Shown here one piece after another: positions 54,741-61,119 of a stretch of 64,000 nucleotides of DNA. Position numbers and translations under genes: made by a program. How positions within the stretch are numbered: the stretch's first letter is position 1; every line of letters begins with the position of its first letter. The stretch lies in the sequence record NC_041878.1, one strand, 5' to 3'. Below the pieces are notes generated by a model. The model had not been told where the DNA came from and made no database searches. It saw nothing but the letters and a program-made list of their open reading frames with translations.

Positions 54741-54933
54741 AATTATAATCTCCTAGAGAATCATTTATATATTAATATTTATCCAGTACTTGCACGATTT
54801 AGTATTAATATCCCTTGACAGGAGATAGAATCTTTGCTACACTTAAAAAAGATGAGTGCTTTTTAAGTACTTCGAAAATATTTAGCTGAAAAATCTTGAA
54901 ACGTAAGGAATTTTTCTGCTATAATGTACACAA

Positions 54934-54981
54934 CAAGGTGAAGTAGCCTTGAAATCAAAATGACTAAGGGAGTCTTAGATT
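54934..54981 (+). promoter_or_regulatory. structured 5' leader of natV
   Basis: CAAGG-TGAAGTAG-CCTTG, A-rich linker, ACTAAGGGAGTCTTAGAT; promoter TTGAAA..TGcTATAAT upstream. Confidence 0.6.
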
Positions 54982-56079
54982 ATGAAAAATGAAAAAGTTT
55001 ATGTATATATCGGTCGTTTCCAGATGGCACATTCTGGTCACGAAGCGACAATCAAACATGCACTTGAAAATGCAGACCGTTTGGTAATTCTTGTTGGTAG
55101 TTCTGAATTAGCACGTGATCCTAAAAATCCGTTCACCTTCGCAGAACGTCATCAAGTACTGGATGCTATGAGTACTCGTTTAGCACAGGAAGAATGGGCT
55201 AAAGGGCGTTCGGTTAAGATTAATATCTTACCAATCCACGATTACGTTTATAACAACAGCAAATGGTTGAAAGAAGTACACGAACAAGTTAAATCTGTAA
55301 CAAGCAGTTCTAATATCTTTATTACTGGTTGTCAGAAAGAAGCAGATGACAGTACTTTCTATCTGAACTTCTTCCCACAATGGCAGCAGGATTTTATTTC
55401 TGAACAAAAAGTAACATCATTAGATACTCGCGGAGTTCCTAATACAGCGAGTACTATTAACAGTACAGAAATGCGTAATCAATTCTTCAGTACTAAACAA
55501 ATTCCTGAAGAACTGCCAGAAGAAACTAAAGAGTTTCTTGAGAAGTTTATGCACACTAAACCAATTGTGTTCGATAATTTGATCGGTGAATTCAATTTTG
55601 TTCAACGCTATCGTGCACAGATGAAAGAACAACTGCCATATGACAACATTCCATTCTTAACGGGTGATTCAATGGTTGTTTGTGCAGGACATGTTCTTCT
55701 GGTTAAACGCCGCACTTTCCCAGGTAAAGGTTTGTATGCACTTCCTGGTGGGTTCTTTGATGCGTGGCAGGATAAAGATCAAATTCAAACTGCATTACGC
55801 GAACTGAAAGAAGAAACGAAAATTGATGTTCCATTGAAAGTACTTGAAGGTTCAATCCGTGAAAGTATGGAATTCGGTGACTTCAATCGTTCATTACGCT
55901 GGCGTATTATCACCAAATGTGCGTACATCCAACTTCAGGACAGCACTTTGCCTAAAGTAAAAGGTGCTGACGATGCTGAGAAAGCATTCTGGATGCCACT
56001 TGGTGAAGTTGTACAGAACCGTGACAAGTTCTTTGAAGACCATTTAAGTATTATCGATACTTTCTTAGGTATTCTTTAA
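54982..56079 (+). CDS. natV: bifunctional NMN adenylyltransferase/Nudix hydrolase (NadM-Nudix, KVP40 NatV-like)
   Basis: GRFQMAHSGH, KNPFTFAER, INSTEMR; PGKGLYALPGGF..RELKEET; KGADDAEKAFW. Confidence 0.93.
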   Translation: MKNEKVYVYIGRFQMAHSGHEATIKHALENADRLVILVGSSELARDPKNPFTFAERHQVLDAMSTRLAQEEWAKGRSVKINILPIHDYVYNNSKWLKEVHEQVKSVTSSSNIFITGCQKEADDSTFYLNFFPQWQQDFISEQKVTSLDTRGVPNTASTINSTEMRNQFFSTKQIPEELPEETKEFLEKFMHTKPIVFDNLIGEFNFVQRYRAQMKEQLPYDNIPFLTGDSMVVCAGHVLLVKRRTFPGKGLYALPGGFFDAWQDKDQIQTALRELKEETKIDVPLKVLEGSIRESMEFGDFNRSLRWRIITKCAYIQLQDSTLPKVKGADDAEKAFWMPLGEVVQNRDKFFEDHLSIIDTFLGIL

Positions 56080-56122
56080 TGTTTAGGAGTACTTCGGTAC
56101 TCCATTTTAAGTAAGAGGAAAT

Positions 56123-56641
56123 ATGTTGTATTGTCAACCAAATGATTTTTATTCTGATATGCGTTATGTGTCAGATAATAATAGTACTTTTATAAAGAAG
56201 TTAGATGTATCTGAATACAAAGTACCAGATGATATTGACAACATAGACCCAATACCGTATTTGATAAAGATGGTTTTTAATGAACCACGAACTTCAGAAA
56301 CGAATCGAATTTTTGCATTAAGAACATTCGGTACATATAACTCTCTTAAAGTCAAAGAGACTGACCGAATAATGCAAGTATACTTTGCCACTGTAAGTAA
56401 TGGTTGTTTGCATATATCCAATCCAAGTGTTTCGAATATAATATTTGAAGATGGGGTGATGTATTATACAACCACTGATGAATATGCAGATGAGTACTGG
56501 TTTACTTTAAAAGATATTGCGGAAGATGCATATAAAAATCCATATTCTATGTATGCTTACGTAACATTGAATGAGAATATATTTAAACCAGATAATTTAA
56601 TGGCAAAGATACCTTTTAATTTATTACAGCATTTGGTATAA
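56123..56641 (+). CDS. hypothetical protein
   Basis: SD GAGGA. Confidence 0.75.
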   Translation: MLYCQPNDFYSDMRYVSDNNSTFIKKLDVSEYKVPDDIDNIDPIPYLIKMVFNEPRTSETNRIFALRTFGTYNSLKVKETDRIMQVYFATVSNGCLHISNPSVSNIIFEDGVMYYTTTDEYADEYWFTLKDIAEDAYKNPYSMYAYVTLNENIFKPDNLMAKIPFNLLQHLV

Positions 56642-56653
56642 ACCAAAATAACC

Positions 56654-56701
56654 GAAAGCGTTGTAGCTTTCATAAAACTTAATACTAAGGGAGTCTTAGA
56701 T
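56654..56701 (+). promoter_or_regulatory. structured 5' leader of nadV
   Basis: GAAAG-CGTTGTAG-CTTTC, A-rich linker, same 18-mer ACTAAGGGAGTCTTAGAT. Confidence 0.6.
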
Positions 56702-58189
56702 ATGAACACTAAATTTAATGATAATGTAAACTTTATTCTCAACGTTGATTCGTACAAAACTGGTCACGGCTTTATGATGAAAGAGGGTGTTGTAGCTCTT
56801 GAATCGAATATCATTGCCCGTAAACCTTCCAAGTACGCAACTCATGTCGTAATGGCTGGTCTTCAGTACTACATTCAGAAGTACTTGGATATTGTCATTA
56901 CCGTTGATGATATTGATGAAGCAGAACTTGAAACAGAACAACGTGGCGATGATTTTGATCGCGGCTTTTGGGAACACATTGTTGAAGTACATGGCGGTAA
57001 AATTCCAGTACATATTCGTGCAGTTCCAGAAGGTACAGTAGTTCCTGTTGGTTGTCCACTAGTACGTTCTTTCAGTACTGATCCTCGTGTTTGCGTAATT
57101 GCAAGTTATATCGAGACTCAGCTACAACGTGCAGTATGGTTCCCAACAACTGTTGCAAGTAATGCTCGTAGCATTAAAGAATTTTTAGCAGATACAATGG
57201 AACGTCATGCAGGACACCGTTTCGTTGATTATCAGCTTCATAACTTCGGGGATCGTGGTGCGTCAAGTTTCGAATCAGCAATTCTGGCTGGTATGTCTCA
57301 CGCAATGGTCTTTAGCGGTTCTGACTGTTTATCTGCGAACCGTTACATTAAACAGTACTTCCACACTACTAAAGCATATTTGAGCAGTGTGACAGCAAGT
57401 GAACATAGTGCAACTTGTTCTAATTCTGATGCGGATCGCCGTGATGATTTCAACATGGCAGTTAAAATGGTTCGTTTGTGGGAGAAGAAAGTTGATAAGT
57501 TCATTGCAAACGGATCAAAAGGTGTTCCACCAATTGTTTCTGTTGTAATTGATACTTATGATGCGTATCGTTTCGTTCGTGAATTTATCGGTACTCGTCT
57601 TAAAGCAACAATTGAAGAAATCGGTAAACGTTGTCCTGGTGCTAAATTAGTTATGCGTCCTGACAGTGGTGATCCAACTACTATGCCAATTGAAATCATT
57701 GAGATTTTAATGGAAAAATTTGGTCACACAGTTAACGAACACGGATATAAAGTACTTCCATCTTATATCGGTGTTATTCAGGGTGATGGTATTAACGAAG
57801 ATAGCATTCGTCAAATCGTAGCTAATCTTGATACTAAAAAGTTCTCTATTGAAAACTTAGCATTTGGTATGGGTGGTAAGCTTGTACATCCAGAGAAAGG
57901 TCGCGATACTTATAGCTTCGCTATGAAAGGTTCTGCACAACAACTGGAAGACGGTACTTGGGAAGATCTGTTCAAAGATCCAATTACTGATGTGGGTAAA
58001 CGTTCTCTCCGTGGACGTGTAACTACTTATGAGTGCACTAATACTCATAAAATTATTGCAGAACGTATTGAACTACAAGAAGTCAATCCATTCTTACGTG
58101 ATATGATGGTTGACGTGTACGTGAATGGTGAGATTATGAATCTCAGCAACTTCGATGAAGTACGTGAACGTGCAAACAAAGGTTTATAA
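56702..58189 (+). CDS. nadV: nicotinamide phosphoribosyltransferase
   Basis: DSYK, HNFGDRG, SEHS, DTYD, RPDSGDP, QGDGI, FGMGG, FAMK. Confidence 0.95.
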   Translation: MNTKFNDNVNFILNVDSYKTGHGFMMKEGVVALESNIIARKPSKYATHVVMAGLQYYIQKYLDIVITVDDIDEAELETEQRGDDFDRGFWEHIVEVHGGKIPVHIRAVPEGTVVPVGCPLVRSFSTDPRVCVIASYIETQLQRAVWFPTTVASNARSIKEFLADTMERHAGHRFVDYQLHNFGDRGASSFESAILAGMSHAMVFSGSDCLSANRYIKQYFHTTKAYLSSVTASEHSATCSNSDADRRDDFNMAVKMVRLWEKKVDKFIANGSKGVPPIVSVVIDTYDAYRFVREFIGTRLKATIEEIGKRCPGAKLVMRPDSGDPTTMPIEIIEILMEKFGHTVNEHGYKVLPSYIGVIQGDGINEDSIRQIVANLDTKKFSIENLAFGMGGKLVHPEKGRDTYSFAMKGSAQQLEDGTWEDLFKDPITDVGKRSLRGRVTTYECTNTHKIIAERIELQEVNPFLRDMMVDVYVNGEIMNLSNFDEVRERANKGL

Positions 58190-60327: not shown

Positions 60328-61119
60328 ATGAACCTCAATGGATTTTTAGCTAATAATGGAGTACCACGTCTAATTTTTTGTACTGGTGCTGGACTATCAA
60401 AAGAATCAGGTATTCAGACTTTCCGCGATGCCGAAGGTGAAGGGTTATGGGATAACGTAAGTGTTGATGAAGTTTGTAATATTGCAACCTTCCATATCAA
60501 TTACGATAAAGTACATAACTTCTATAACGCAATGCGTAAAGGTTTACTGAATTATCAACCGAACGCTGCACATCATTTTATTGCAGAAATGCAACGAAAG
60601 TTTGGTCATGACCGTGTTATGCATATTACTGCTAACGTTGATGATCTAAGTGAACGTGCTGGCGGTACTGCGATGCATGTACACGGTTTCCTGAAAGAAG
60701 TAGTTGAACCGTACAGTACTAACACCAATGACTATAATGTTCTTGATGTTGGGTATACAGAATTTGTTCCAACACCAGGGATAATTTCTAAACCAAATAT
60801 TGTTATGTTTGGTGAAGGTTTCTGGTTCACAAATGGTGTACGTAAAAACATTTACGATGACCTTTATAAAGTACTAGATAATGTGAATTCACGAGATACG
60901 ATTATTGTAATCGGTTCTTCTGATACTGTTATTCCGTGGTCTATCTATGCTGGGGTTGCTACTCCTGCTGAAGTACTTAATGTGAATCCAGAAGCACATA
61001 AAAATGATGATTTCTTCACGTATAATTTATACGAACCAATTACTGAAGCTTTAGATGTTATCGAAGAATATGTAACTAAACGTATGGATTATGAAGATTT
61101 CACTGGTCAAGAATATTAA
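60328..61119 (+). CDS. Sir2/CobB-family sirtuin
   Basis: TGAGLSKESGIQTFRD, PNAAH, TANVDDL.ERAG, HVHG, KPNIVMFGE, IGSS. Confidence 0.9.
   Translation: MNLNGFLANNGVPRLIFCTGAGLSKESGIQTFRDAEGEGLWDNVSVDEVCNIATFHINYDKVHNFYNAMRKGLLNYQPNAAHHFIAEMQRKFGHDRVMHITANVDDLSERAGGTAMHVHGFLKEVVEPYSTNTNDYNVLDVGYTEFVPTPGIISKPNIVMFGEGFWFTNGVRKNIYDDLYKVLDNVNSRDTIIVIGSSDTVIPWSIYAGVATPAEVLNVNPEAHKNDDFFTYNLYEPITEALDVIEEYVTKRMDYEDFTGQEY

Follow-up and report, generated by a model that had tools for sequence, protein, structure and literature searches.

A two-hairpin leader conserved at the NAD+ synthesis genes of Pectobacterium phage CBB, other phages, and bacteria: a candidate translational operator

The genes natV and nadV of Pectobacterium phage vB_PcaM_CBB (CBB), a 378-kb jumbo phage of the genus Mimasvirus, are each preceded by a short leader whose design recurs at genes for the synthesis of nicotinamide adenine dinucleotide (NAD+) in other phages and in bacteria. 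Judged by sequence comparison, the two CBB leaders are copies of one conserved, gene-specific RNA element and form part of a widespread leader of NAD+ synthesis genes. The family design consists of a first hairpin with the loop R-N-A-G-W, a G-poor linker, and a second hairpin that carries the GGA of the Shine–Dalgarno sequence (SD) in its loop. We infer regulation by some effector, together with its direction, and consider it probable that the leader serves as a translational operator of the NAD+ synthesis genes. The window that we analyzed is the stretch of bases 1–64000 of the CBB genome, and a 2.3-kb region of it is 100% identical to KU574722.1 at the same coordinates.

Together, natV and nadV constitute phage NAD+ reconstitution pathway 2 (NARP2), which overcomes NAD+-depleting defences, for example, Thoeris, DSR, and SIR2-HerA (10.1101/2024.02.11.579819). 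The pathway overproduces NAD+ and consumes phosphoribosyl pyrophosphate (PRPP), and the KVP40 operon is toxic in E. coli (10.1101/2024.02.11.579819). The overproduction of NAD+, the drain on PRPP, and the toxicity provide a rationale for feedback control of the two genes.

The two leaders of phage CBB

An 18-mer (ACTAAGGGAGTCTTAGAT) occurs exactly at 54963–54980 before natV and at 56684–56701 before nadV and covers the ribosome-binding sites (RBSs) of both genes. It was also recovered as a repeat family (D6) of the window, in which no third copy with up to three mismatches was found (0.04 expected). The two genes and the parts of their predicted leaders are as follows.

54982–56079, + strand: natV (CBB_113), nicotinamide mononucleotide (NMN) adenylyltransferase plus Nudix, with the domains CTP_transf_like (cytidylyltransferase-like NMNAT) and NUDIX
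56702–58189, + strand: nadV (CBB_115), nicotinamide phosphoribosyltransferase, with the domains NAMPT_N and NAPRTase
54934–54951, + strand: hairpin 1 (P1) of the natV leader, CAAGG (54934–54938), loop UGAAGUAG (54939–54946), and CCUUG (54947–54951)
54952–54963, + strand: A-rich linker of the natV leader, 12 nt, variable in sequence and length among relatives
54964–54978, + strand: SD hairpin (hairpin 2) of natV, CUAAG (54964–54968), GGAGU (54969–54973), and CUUAG (54974–54978), with the AUG at 54982, 3 nt on
56654–56671, + strand: hairpin 1 (P1) of the nadV leader, GAAAG (56654–56658), loop CGUUGUAG (56659–56666), and CUUUC (56667–56671)
56672–56684, + strand: linker of the nadV leader, 13 nt
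56685–56699, + strand: SD hairpin (hairpin 2) of nadV, CUAAG-GGAGU-CUUAG, with the AUG at 56702, 2 nt on

The stems of hairpin 1 differ between natV and nadV, and both carry an 8-nt loop that ends in GUAG. This loop, Y-G-W-W-G-U-A-G, forms a Y-G pair in the predicted fold, which leaves a loop of 6 nt. Moreover, the predicted minimum-energy folds of both leaders contain both hairpins, with energies for hairpin 1 of −6.4 kcal/mol in natV (z −3.65) and −6.6 kcal/mol in nadV (z −3.95). The original prediction, which was made from the CBB sequence, had described the identical 18-mer over the two SDs, the identities of natV and nadV, and 5-bp upstream hairpins with different stems and an 8-nt loop ending in GUAG, and all of these descriptions hold, the gene identities by virtue of the domains listed above. 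It had also given the linker as 11–12 nt, which is right for natV, whereas the linker of nadV is 1 nt longer.

Hairpins with the SD in the loop are not a general habit of CBB. Such hairpins, of at least 4 bp, precede 19 of the 114 predicted genes of the window, against 18.1 expected from shuffled upstream regions; there is no excess, and we rejected this explanation. What sets the two leaders apart is that they are identical and are conserved. Similarly, the loop heptamer GWWGTAG is not enriched as a genome-wide signal (35 against 29). It lies in a hairpin at the two leaders, in one AT-only case of 4 bp, and at one site within nadV, and nowhere else. A third P1-like hairpin inside nadV (56783–56803; 16.3 bits with model R1, described below) arises from the codons of a conserved peptide, and its pairing is lost in relatives; we regard it as a product of chance.

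Conservation among Rak2-like phages

In IMG/VR, exact copies of the hairpin 2 15-mer are confined to the leaders of natV and nadV in Rak2-like jumbo phages, at most two per genome, apart from an unrelated 173-kb contig (L020), where the exact CBB hairpin 2 precedes a natV whose product is 36% identical. BLASTN of the leader against GenBank phages returned records of Mimasvirus and Alcyoneusvirus only, at no more than two places each. The 15-mer is shared without change by phages whose NatV and NadV proteins are only 36–60% identical.

The loop of hairpin 1 is likewise retained, as Y-G-(N)-N-G-U-A-G, in the 21 distinct Rak2-like leaders. It is carried on nine stems (CAAGG, CAAAG, GAAAG, GAAAAG, AGAGAG, AGAGAA, GCCGC, GGUAG, and GUAG), with compensatory changes at all 5 pairs and 99% of the cells paired. 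The linker of these phages ranges from 9 to 16 nt. In natV of RaK2, the arms of hairpin 2 are swapped, and the pairing is kept. A model of the Rak2-like class (R1) found just the natV and nadV leader sites in the window. Conservation of the leader in homologous phage genes, on which the original prediction had made its case depend, is present, and the stems covary.

A wider family at NAD+ synthesis genes

Homologues of NadV and NatV at 29–50% identity, which were fetched by protein similarity alone, show the same leader layout in other sequences. In their loci, hairpin 2 was found at 34 of 38 natV or nadV starts compared with 19 of 145 other genes. The pattern of this hairpin, to which CBB conforms, is a stem of 4–7 bp and a 5-nt loop starting with GGA, ending 0–4 nt before the natV or nadV start. 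Furthermore, we collected 80 bacterial and 80 viral nadV loci by protein profile, and 79 further viral loci were ascertained through NatV. In the viral nadV-ascertained loci, hairpin 2 is found at 73 of 80 nadV and 41 of 46 natV genes, and bacterial genes that form natV-nadV pairs also have it. The tops of the upstream hairpin in the family read G-AUAGA-C, with the variants G-GGAGU-C, C-AGAGA-G, and C-AGUGA-G. The carriers include Gammaproteobacteria (Marinobacter, Hahella, Thalassolituus, Microbulbifer, and Thiothrix among them) and Alphaproteobacteria such as Sphingopyxis, Methylocystis, Hellea, and Roseibium, as well as Variovorax (Betaproteobacteria), Sulfurovum/Sulfuricurvum (Campylobacterota), and many phages. 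The full motif was not found in the T4-like RB43, Aeromonas phage 25, the KVP40-like Vibrio phage 6E35.1a, CcrColossus, or Barba31A.

A covariance model (R2) was built from alignment A3, which contains 45 bacterial and viral leaders, readily aligned with one another, and no Rak2-like sequence. In A3, 96% of the cells of the two-hairpin structure are paired compared with 51% in shuffles. Compensatory changes occur at every stem pair of the family (12–13 pairs; all 13 in A3), and RNAalifold independently predicts the same two hairpins. R2 was run with filters off over the whole 64-kb window, bases 1–64000 of the 378379 bases of the genome. The top match is the nadV leader (56655–56707; 25.0 bits, E 0.0016) and the second is the natV leader (54934–54987; 23.3 bits, E 0.0039), with E-values that are rough for both R1 and R2; the third-ranked match scores 13.9 bits. 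Since R2 was built without Rak2-like sequences and still ranks the CBB leaders as its top two, it provides an objective basis for their membership in the family.

The longer loop of hairpin 1 in CBB is treated by R2 as an insertion; in CBB, the 8-nt loop stands in place of the family pentaloop R-N-A-G-W closed by G-C or C-G. Contig L020 bridges the two forms by combining the pentaloop of the family with a hairpin 2 exactly as in CBB. On these comparisons, the CBB leaders are a variant form of the family, that is, diverged copies.

R2 returned 67 matches in the bacterial loci, 92 in the nadV-ascertained viral loci, and 122 in the 79 NatV-ascertained viral loci, a total of about 1.13 Mb. The strand of all 281 matches is that of the gene, with none on the opposite strand. 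Among the first 159 (67 + 92), 152 end at a natV or nadV start codon, and the 122 matches in the NatV-ascertained loci include 53 at natV and 48 at nadV (101/122). The remaining matches lie before nadA, a Band_7 gene, and small phage open reading frame (ORF) families. In all, 235 distinct leader sequences were found.

These data bear on the suggestion that CTAAG-N5-CTTAG is a DNA operator bound by a dimeric transcription factor, for example, an NrtR-like protein. In favor of such an operator, the 15-mer forms a perfect inverted repeat and follows closely on a promoter. However, across the family the arms vary while staying complementary, and the center, which is the SD, is conserved, the reverse of what a protein–DNA palindrome shows. 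Moreover, the exclusive use of the coding strand, the fixed distance from the start codon, and the copies that lie within operons, between genes, all speak for an element read in RNA. We therefore give the DNA operator next to no weight.

In the bacterial loci (L077–L156), the leader is coupled to natV: it is found at nadV in 35 of 39 loci with an adjacent natV compared with 1 of 40 solitary nadV genes. Solitary bacterial nadV genes without the leader belong to Rhizobiales, Vibrio, Psittacicella, and others, and they may have a different regulator or a separate cassette origin. A phage nadV can bear the leader with natV more than 1.8 kb off; in one case, natV lies approximately 2.4 kb upstream on the same contig.

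Several loci carry the leader at further genes. A phage operon nadA-natV-nadV (L287:640–2950; IMGVR_UViG_3300020045_011377) has its own two-hairpin copy at each gene, and its nadA encodes quinolinate synthase, an enzyme of de novo NAD+ synthesis (Pfam E 1e-83). Small phage ORFs adjoining natV or nadV also bear the leader (L263:1473–1796, L256:1448–1801, L272:872–1243, L249:1059–1697, and L218:832–1726); they comprise phrog_12218, phrog_37251, phrog_33851, and phrog_1843, all of unknown function, and one 81-aa ORF, and they may belong to an NAD+ regulon. In L218, the leader stands at three consecutive genes. In Dasania phycosphaerae (L094:3314–4407), a Band_7/SPFH gene directly follows the bacterial nadV and has an R2 match at its start (22.2 bits, E 0.04).

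Conserved positions in the two loops

Hairpin 1 ends in a pentaloop in 90 of 113 parsed copies. Within these 90 pentaloops, A (70) or G (17) stands at position 1, position 2 is unconstrained, A occupies position 3 in 78 and G position 4 in 87, and the last position holds A (70) or U (15). Positions 1 and 5 go together, with A..A in 69, G..U in 15, and other combinations in 6 copies. Loop 2 (n = 111) reads G (111), G (111), and A (108), followed by G (87), U (20), or A (4) and then U (75), C (28), A (6), or G (2). The linker between the hairpins measures 1–27 nt, with a median of 10, and contains only 8% G; occasional copies have an extra hairpin. Additionally, loop 2 is narrowed in the RNAalifold prediction by a pair between its first and fifth positions (GU 29, GC 11), which suggests that both hairpins may be capped by an N-A-G triloop.

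The trinucleotide of loop 2, invariant in 108 of 111 copies and placed in a short hairpin over the SD, is also the defining trinucleotide of CsrA/RsmA sites. A layout of two sites with variable spacing is typical of CsrA-type dimers, and RsmA is used by the host genus. A target of such a global regulator, bound both over the SD and further upstream, or of a phage RegA/RegB-type factor is nevertheless quite improbable. The loop of hairpin 1 usually lacks the trinucleotide, which is absent from the P1 loop of CBB and from most phage copies. The same leader occurs in Alpha- and Betaproteobacteria, from which, to our knowledge, CsrA is mostly absent. Moreover, a global regulator leaves the restriction to NAD+ genes unexplained, as the distribution of the leader is gene-specific and taxon-wide. 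RegA and RegB are T4-type proteins and cannot account for the bacterial copies.

Comparison with known RNA families

Rfam 15 was searched with the 71- and 76-nt CBB leaders, one phage leader, and one bacterial leader at E ≤ 10, and no family matched; with 12 bacterial and viral loci (59 kb) at E ≤ 0.5, no leader was matched. The families without a match include preQ1-I/II/III, nadA (NAD+-I), pnuC (NAD+-II), mini-ykkC, and PyrR, and preQ1-I (RF00522) was not listed at E ≤ 10 for the 71- and 76-nt queries or for the 2.3-kb region. The chance-level partial matches were SAM-III (14.7 bits), TarB, and CrcZ, and one tRNA was also reported.

The original prediction had likened the leaders to preQ1-I and NAD+-II riboswitches and had proposed that the loop UAG could pair with CUA, giving an H-type pseudoknot in competition with the SD hairpin. 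The likeness is one of superficial dimensions, namely, the 5-bp P1, the A-rich linker, and the CUA before the SD, and in contig L020 the P1 loop is complementary over 4–5 nt to the start of hairpin 2. However, neither resemblance survived the Rfam searches, and the features of NAD+-II are absent. The proposed pairing amounts to only 3 bp and is invariant, and the linker ranges from 1 to 27 nt across the family. Family-wide, loop 1 is no more complementary to its own linker, hairpin 2, or all downstream sequence than are loops permuted among the leaders (4.708 for own loops, 4.711 for permuted ones). For loop 1 against the start region, a marginal signal appeared (7/300 permutations), which we do not trust, and neither the closing pair nor the loop of hairpin 2 is associated with the class of loop 1. 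With genes that belong neither to queuosine metabolism nor to pnuC, a riboswitch of the preQ1-I or NAD+-II kind built on this pseudoknot is very improbable. The wider description of the leader as riboswitch-like remains a live reading, in that sequence data point to a conserved, gene-specific, covarying element with the SD in a loop that is tied to NAD+ genes beyond CBB.

PreQ1-I riboswitches resemble the CBB leader in their small size, the 5-bp first stem, and the A-rich stretch before the SD. In contrast, they form an H-type pseudoknot with a constrained A-rich segment and serve queuosine genes, whereas the leader has a variable linker and precedes NMNAT-Nudix and Nampt genes. NAD+-II combines P1 and P1a, which carry an internal bulge, with a pseudoknot that takes in the RBS, and it is known only at pnuC of Streptococcus (PMC7749635). 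Like the present element, it is a cis leader of an NAD+ pathway gene that involves the RBS (PMC7749635). In the present leader, by contrast, P1 is a plain hairpin, the RBS lies in a hairpin loop, the genes are natV, nadV, and nadA, and the carriers are proteobacteria and phages. NAD+-I consists of two tandem bulged stem-loops before nadA in Acidobacteria, with a ACANCCCC bulge (PMC6859854, PMC7297122). The two similar tandem stem-loops are a likeness, and the present motif also precedes one nadA; the CBB leaders differ in that they are without the ACANCCCC bulge and without a run of C.

In architecture, the nearest riboswitch is guanidine-II (mini-ykkC), a metabolite sensor with two small hairpins, conserved loops, covarying stems, and a variable linker at the RBS; in both cases, there is one copy per regulated gene. 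Guanidine-II demonstrates that a layout this simple can sense a metabolite. Guanidine-II differs in its conserved four-nucleotide loops, compared with R-N-A-G-W and G-G-A-K-Y in the leader, and in its guanidine exporter genes. Furthermore, the SD of the leader lies inside loop 2 and not beside a hairpin, and the loops of the leader are too unlike and too uncomplementary to kiss.

Translational operators bound by enzymes offer a second comparison. They include the operator of the T4 DNA polymerase gene 43, the PyrR loops, and the iron-responsive elements bound by aconitase/IRP, alongside readers of triplets such as TRAP and HutP. Such operators share with the leader a short hairpin with a conserved loop at or over the SD, a free stem, variable spacing and copy number, and control of each cistron. 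Their regulators are encoded in the same operon and are hence portable. The gene 43 operator, with a 5-bp stem and an 8-nt loop, matches P1 of CBB in both measures. The PyrR family of Rfam does not match the leader, however. We know of no RNA binding by NadM-Nudix or NadV enzymes. Full-text literature searches for an RNA element at nadV, nadM, or Nampt genes returned no account of one, Rfam 15 holds none, and the paper on NARP2 mentions no riboswitch or untranslated region (10.1101/2024.02.11.579819).

Flanking features in the window

The features around the two leaders are as follows.

54815–54843, + strand: promoter-like TTGACA-17-TACACT upstream of natV, with 10/12 consensus matches only and a similar site in GAP32
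54896–54925, + strand: promoter-like TTGAAA-18-TATAAT with TG before natV, 11/12 matches, conserved in relatives directly 5′ of hairpin 1
56086–56103, + strand: terminator-like hairpin right after the natV stop, 7 pairs, with a UUCG-type loop and a weak T tail
56123–56641, + strand: CBB_114, protein of unknown function between natV and nadV (phrog_25832), without an R1 or R2 match upstream
56634–56642, + strand: extended −10-like TGgTATAAA ahead of the nadV leader, sharing bases with the stop codon of CBB_114; conserved in relatives, but within coding sequence

The 241 bp at 54741–54981 separate the divergent CBB_112 (− strand) from natV, and both tandem promoter-like sites in this interval are kept in GAP32. 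Hairpin 1 of natV begins 8 nt past the −10 element of the site at 54896–54925. The conservation of this site directly 5′ of hairpin 1 suggests that the natV transcript begins with hairpin 1 at its 5′ end. For nadV, the promoter scan yielded only a weak 9/12 site at 56567–56596; the TGgTATAAA sequence in the CBB_114 stop was read by eye and was not called by the scan. Of the two promoters that the original prediction had assigned, one to each gene, that of natV is thus borne out by an 11/12 match, whereas that of nadV is weak. The terminator-like hairpin, which is the source of the weak, chance-level TarB match in Rfam, follows the natV stop, and natV may be its own transcript. CBB_120 (60328–61119), annotated as Sir2-like, an NAD+-using family, is encoded 2 kb beyond nadV, and neither R1 nor R2 places a leader before it.

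Discussion

As a probable translational operator, the leader would act in cis on the RNA at translation initiation. Hairpin 2 holds the SD GGA(G) in its 5-nt loop 0–4 nt before the start codon. Hairpin 1, whose stem sequence is free and whose purine-rich loop is conserved (6–8 nt and ending in UAG in CBB), stands upstream of the short G-poor linker. One effector might recognize both similar loops and cover or lock hairpin 2. Such locking would lower the translation of all leader-bearing genes together and would constitute feedback on a costly, potentially toxic pathway.

Two kinds of effector can be considered. A protein encoded in the cassette, NatV or NadV, is an appreciable possibility, although it falls short of an even chance. 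It is suggested by the few conserved nucleotides, the variable spacing, the occasional extra hairpin, the copies at each cistron, and the bacterial coupling to natV. An NAD-pathway metabolite bound by the RNA itself is only slightly less likely, and it is suggested by the three different NAD+ enzymes within the regulon, by the wide taxonomic range, and by the element's independence of the host. If a metabolite were the effector, the leader might comprise the aptamer and expression platform of a third, hitherto undescribed class of NAD+ riboswitch, which we regard as possible at less than even odds. The candidate ligands would be NAD+, NMN, nicotinamide, ADP-ribose, and PRPP, and the ligand would bridge two N-A-G-capped hairpins, the second loop being the SD.

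Several observations weigh against a regulated operator. The conserved nucleotides are few, approximately 3–4 per loop. Neither the permutation test nor the comparison of loop classes revealed a tertiary pairing of one hairpin with the other. Hairpin 2 of CBB alone is marginal (−3.3 kcal/mol), and since it is weak and leaves the SD in its loop, it could present the SD rather than mask it. Moreover, the two halves of the design can part company. In four contigs of about 360 kb (L041:2945–3000, L164, L165, and L166; NadV 65–80% identical), nadV has hairpin 1 with its loop and has lost hairpin 2, which is replaced by a plain purine-rich SD. In natV of Xanthomonas phage XaC1 (L076:801–853), hairpin 2 is kept, and the loop of hairpin 1 is different and U-rich. 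Hairpin 2 with a GGAGU loop stands without hairpin 1 at natV and nadV of Stenotrophomonas phage Mendera (L241:375–414 and 1450–1494) and at nadV of RB43 (L237:1460–1494). Because Mendera and RB43 keep hairpin 2 alone, this hairpin is the more widespread half of the design. Finally, the seeds of A3 were picked by hairpin parse, and alignments A4, A5, and A7 were fitted to the model, so that the pair counts lean toward the structure; the unbiased figures are the protein-ascertained frequencies and the strand asymmetry.

A rival reading is that the leader is a constitutive module for translation and stability with no effector and no regulation. In that case, hairpin 2 would present or tune the SD so as to fix a modest level of translation for the mobile natV-nadV cassette in any genomic context, and hairpin 1 would be a 5′-terminal stabilizer or an insulator. 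The position of the SD in the loop and not in the stem, the persistence of hairpin 2 without P1 in Mendera and RB43, and the start of P1 7–10 nt past a −10 box at natV and at nadV of many phages are all in line with such a module. Additionally, pairing of positions 1 and 5 of loop 2, as predicted by RNAalifold, would partly bury the SD and lower initiation, which fits the toxicity of NARP2. We nonetheless consider a constitutive module unlikely. It leaves unexplained why the loop of P1 is constrained (G4 87/90, A3 78/90, with positions 1 and 5 covarying) while its stem pairs are free. It likewise does not account for the confinement to NAD+ synthesis genes and their neighbours or for the invariance of the hairpin 2 15-mer across phages with such divergent proteins.

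A dedicated RNA leader at both genes, as the translational operator that we favour would be, would represent the first candidate control element of NARP2, and the same leader stands before bacterial nadM-Nudix and nadV and before a phage nadA. Whether the effector is a protein or a metabolite, the motif is a practical marker, and it flags phrog_12218, phrog_33851, phrog_37251, and phrog_1843 as possible members of the NAD+ regulon. If the RNA binds NatV or NadV, a further metabolic enzyme would join those that repress translation. If it binds a metabolite, it would be a new riboswitch class for a central cofactor. Were it indeed a third class of NAD+ riboswitch, a lytic phage could set its NAD+ reconstitution to the level of NAD+ or precursor left by the host defences, with a device common to proteobacteria and the phages that use NARP2 for counter-defence.

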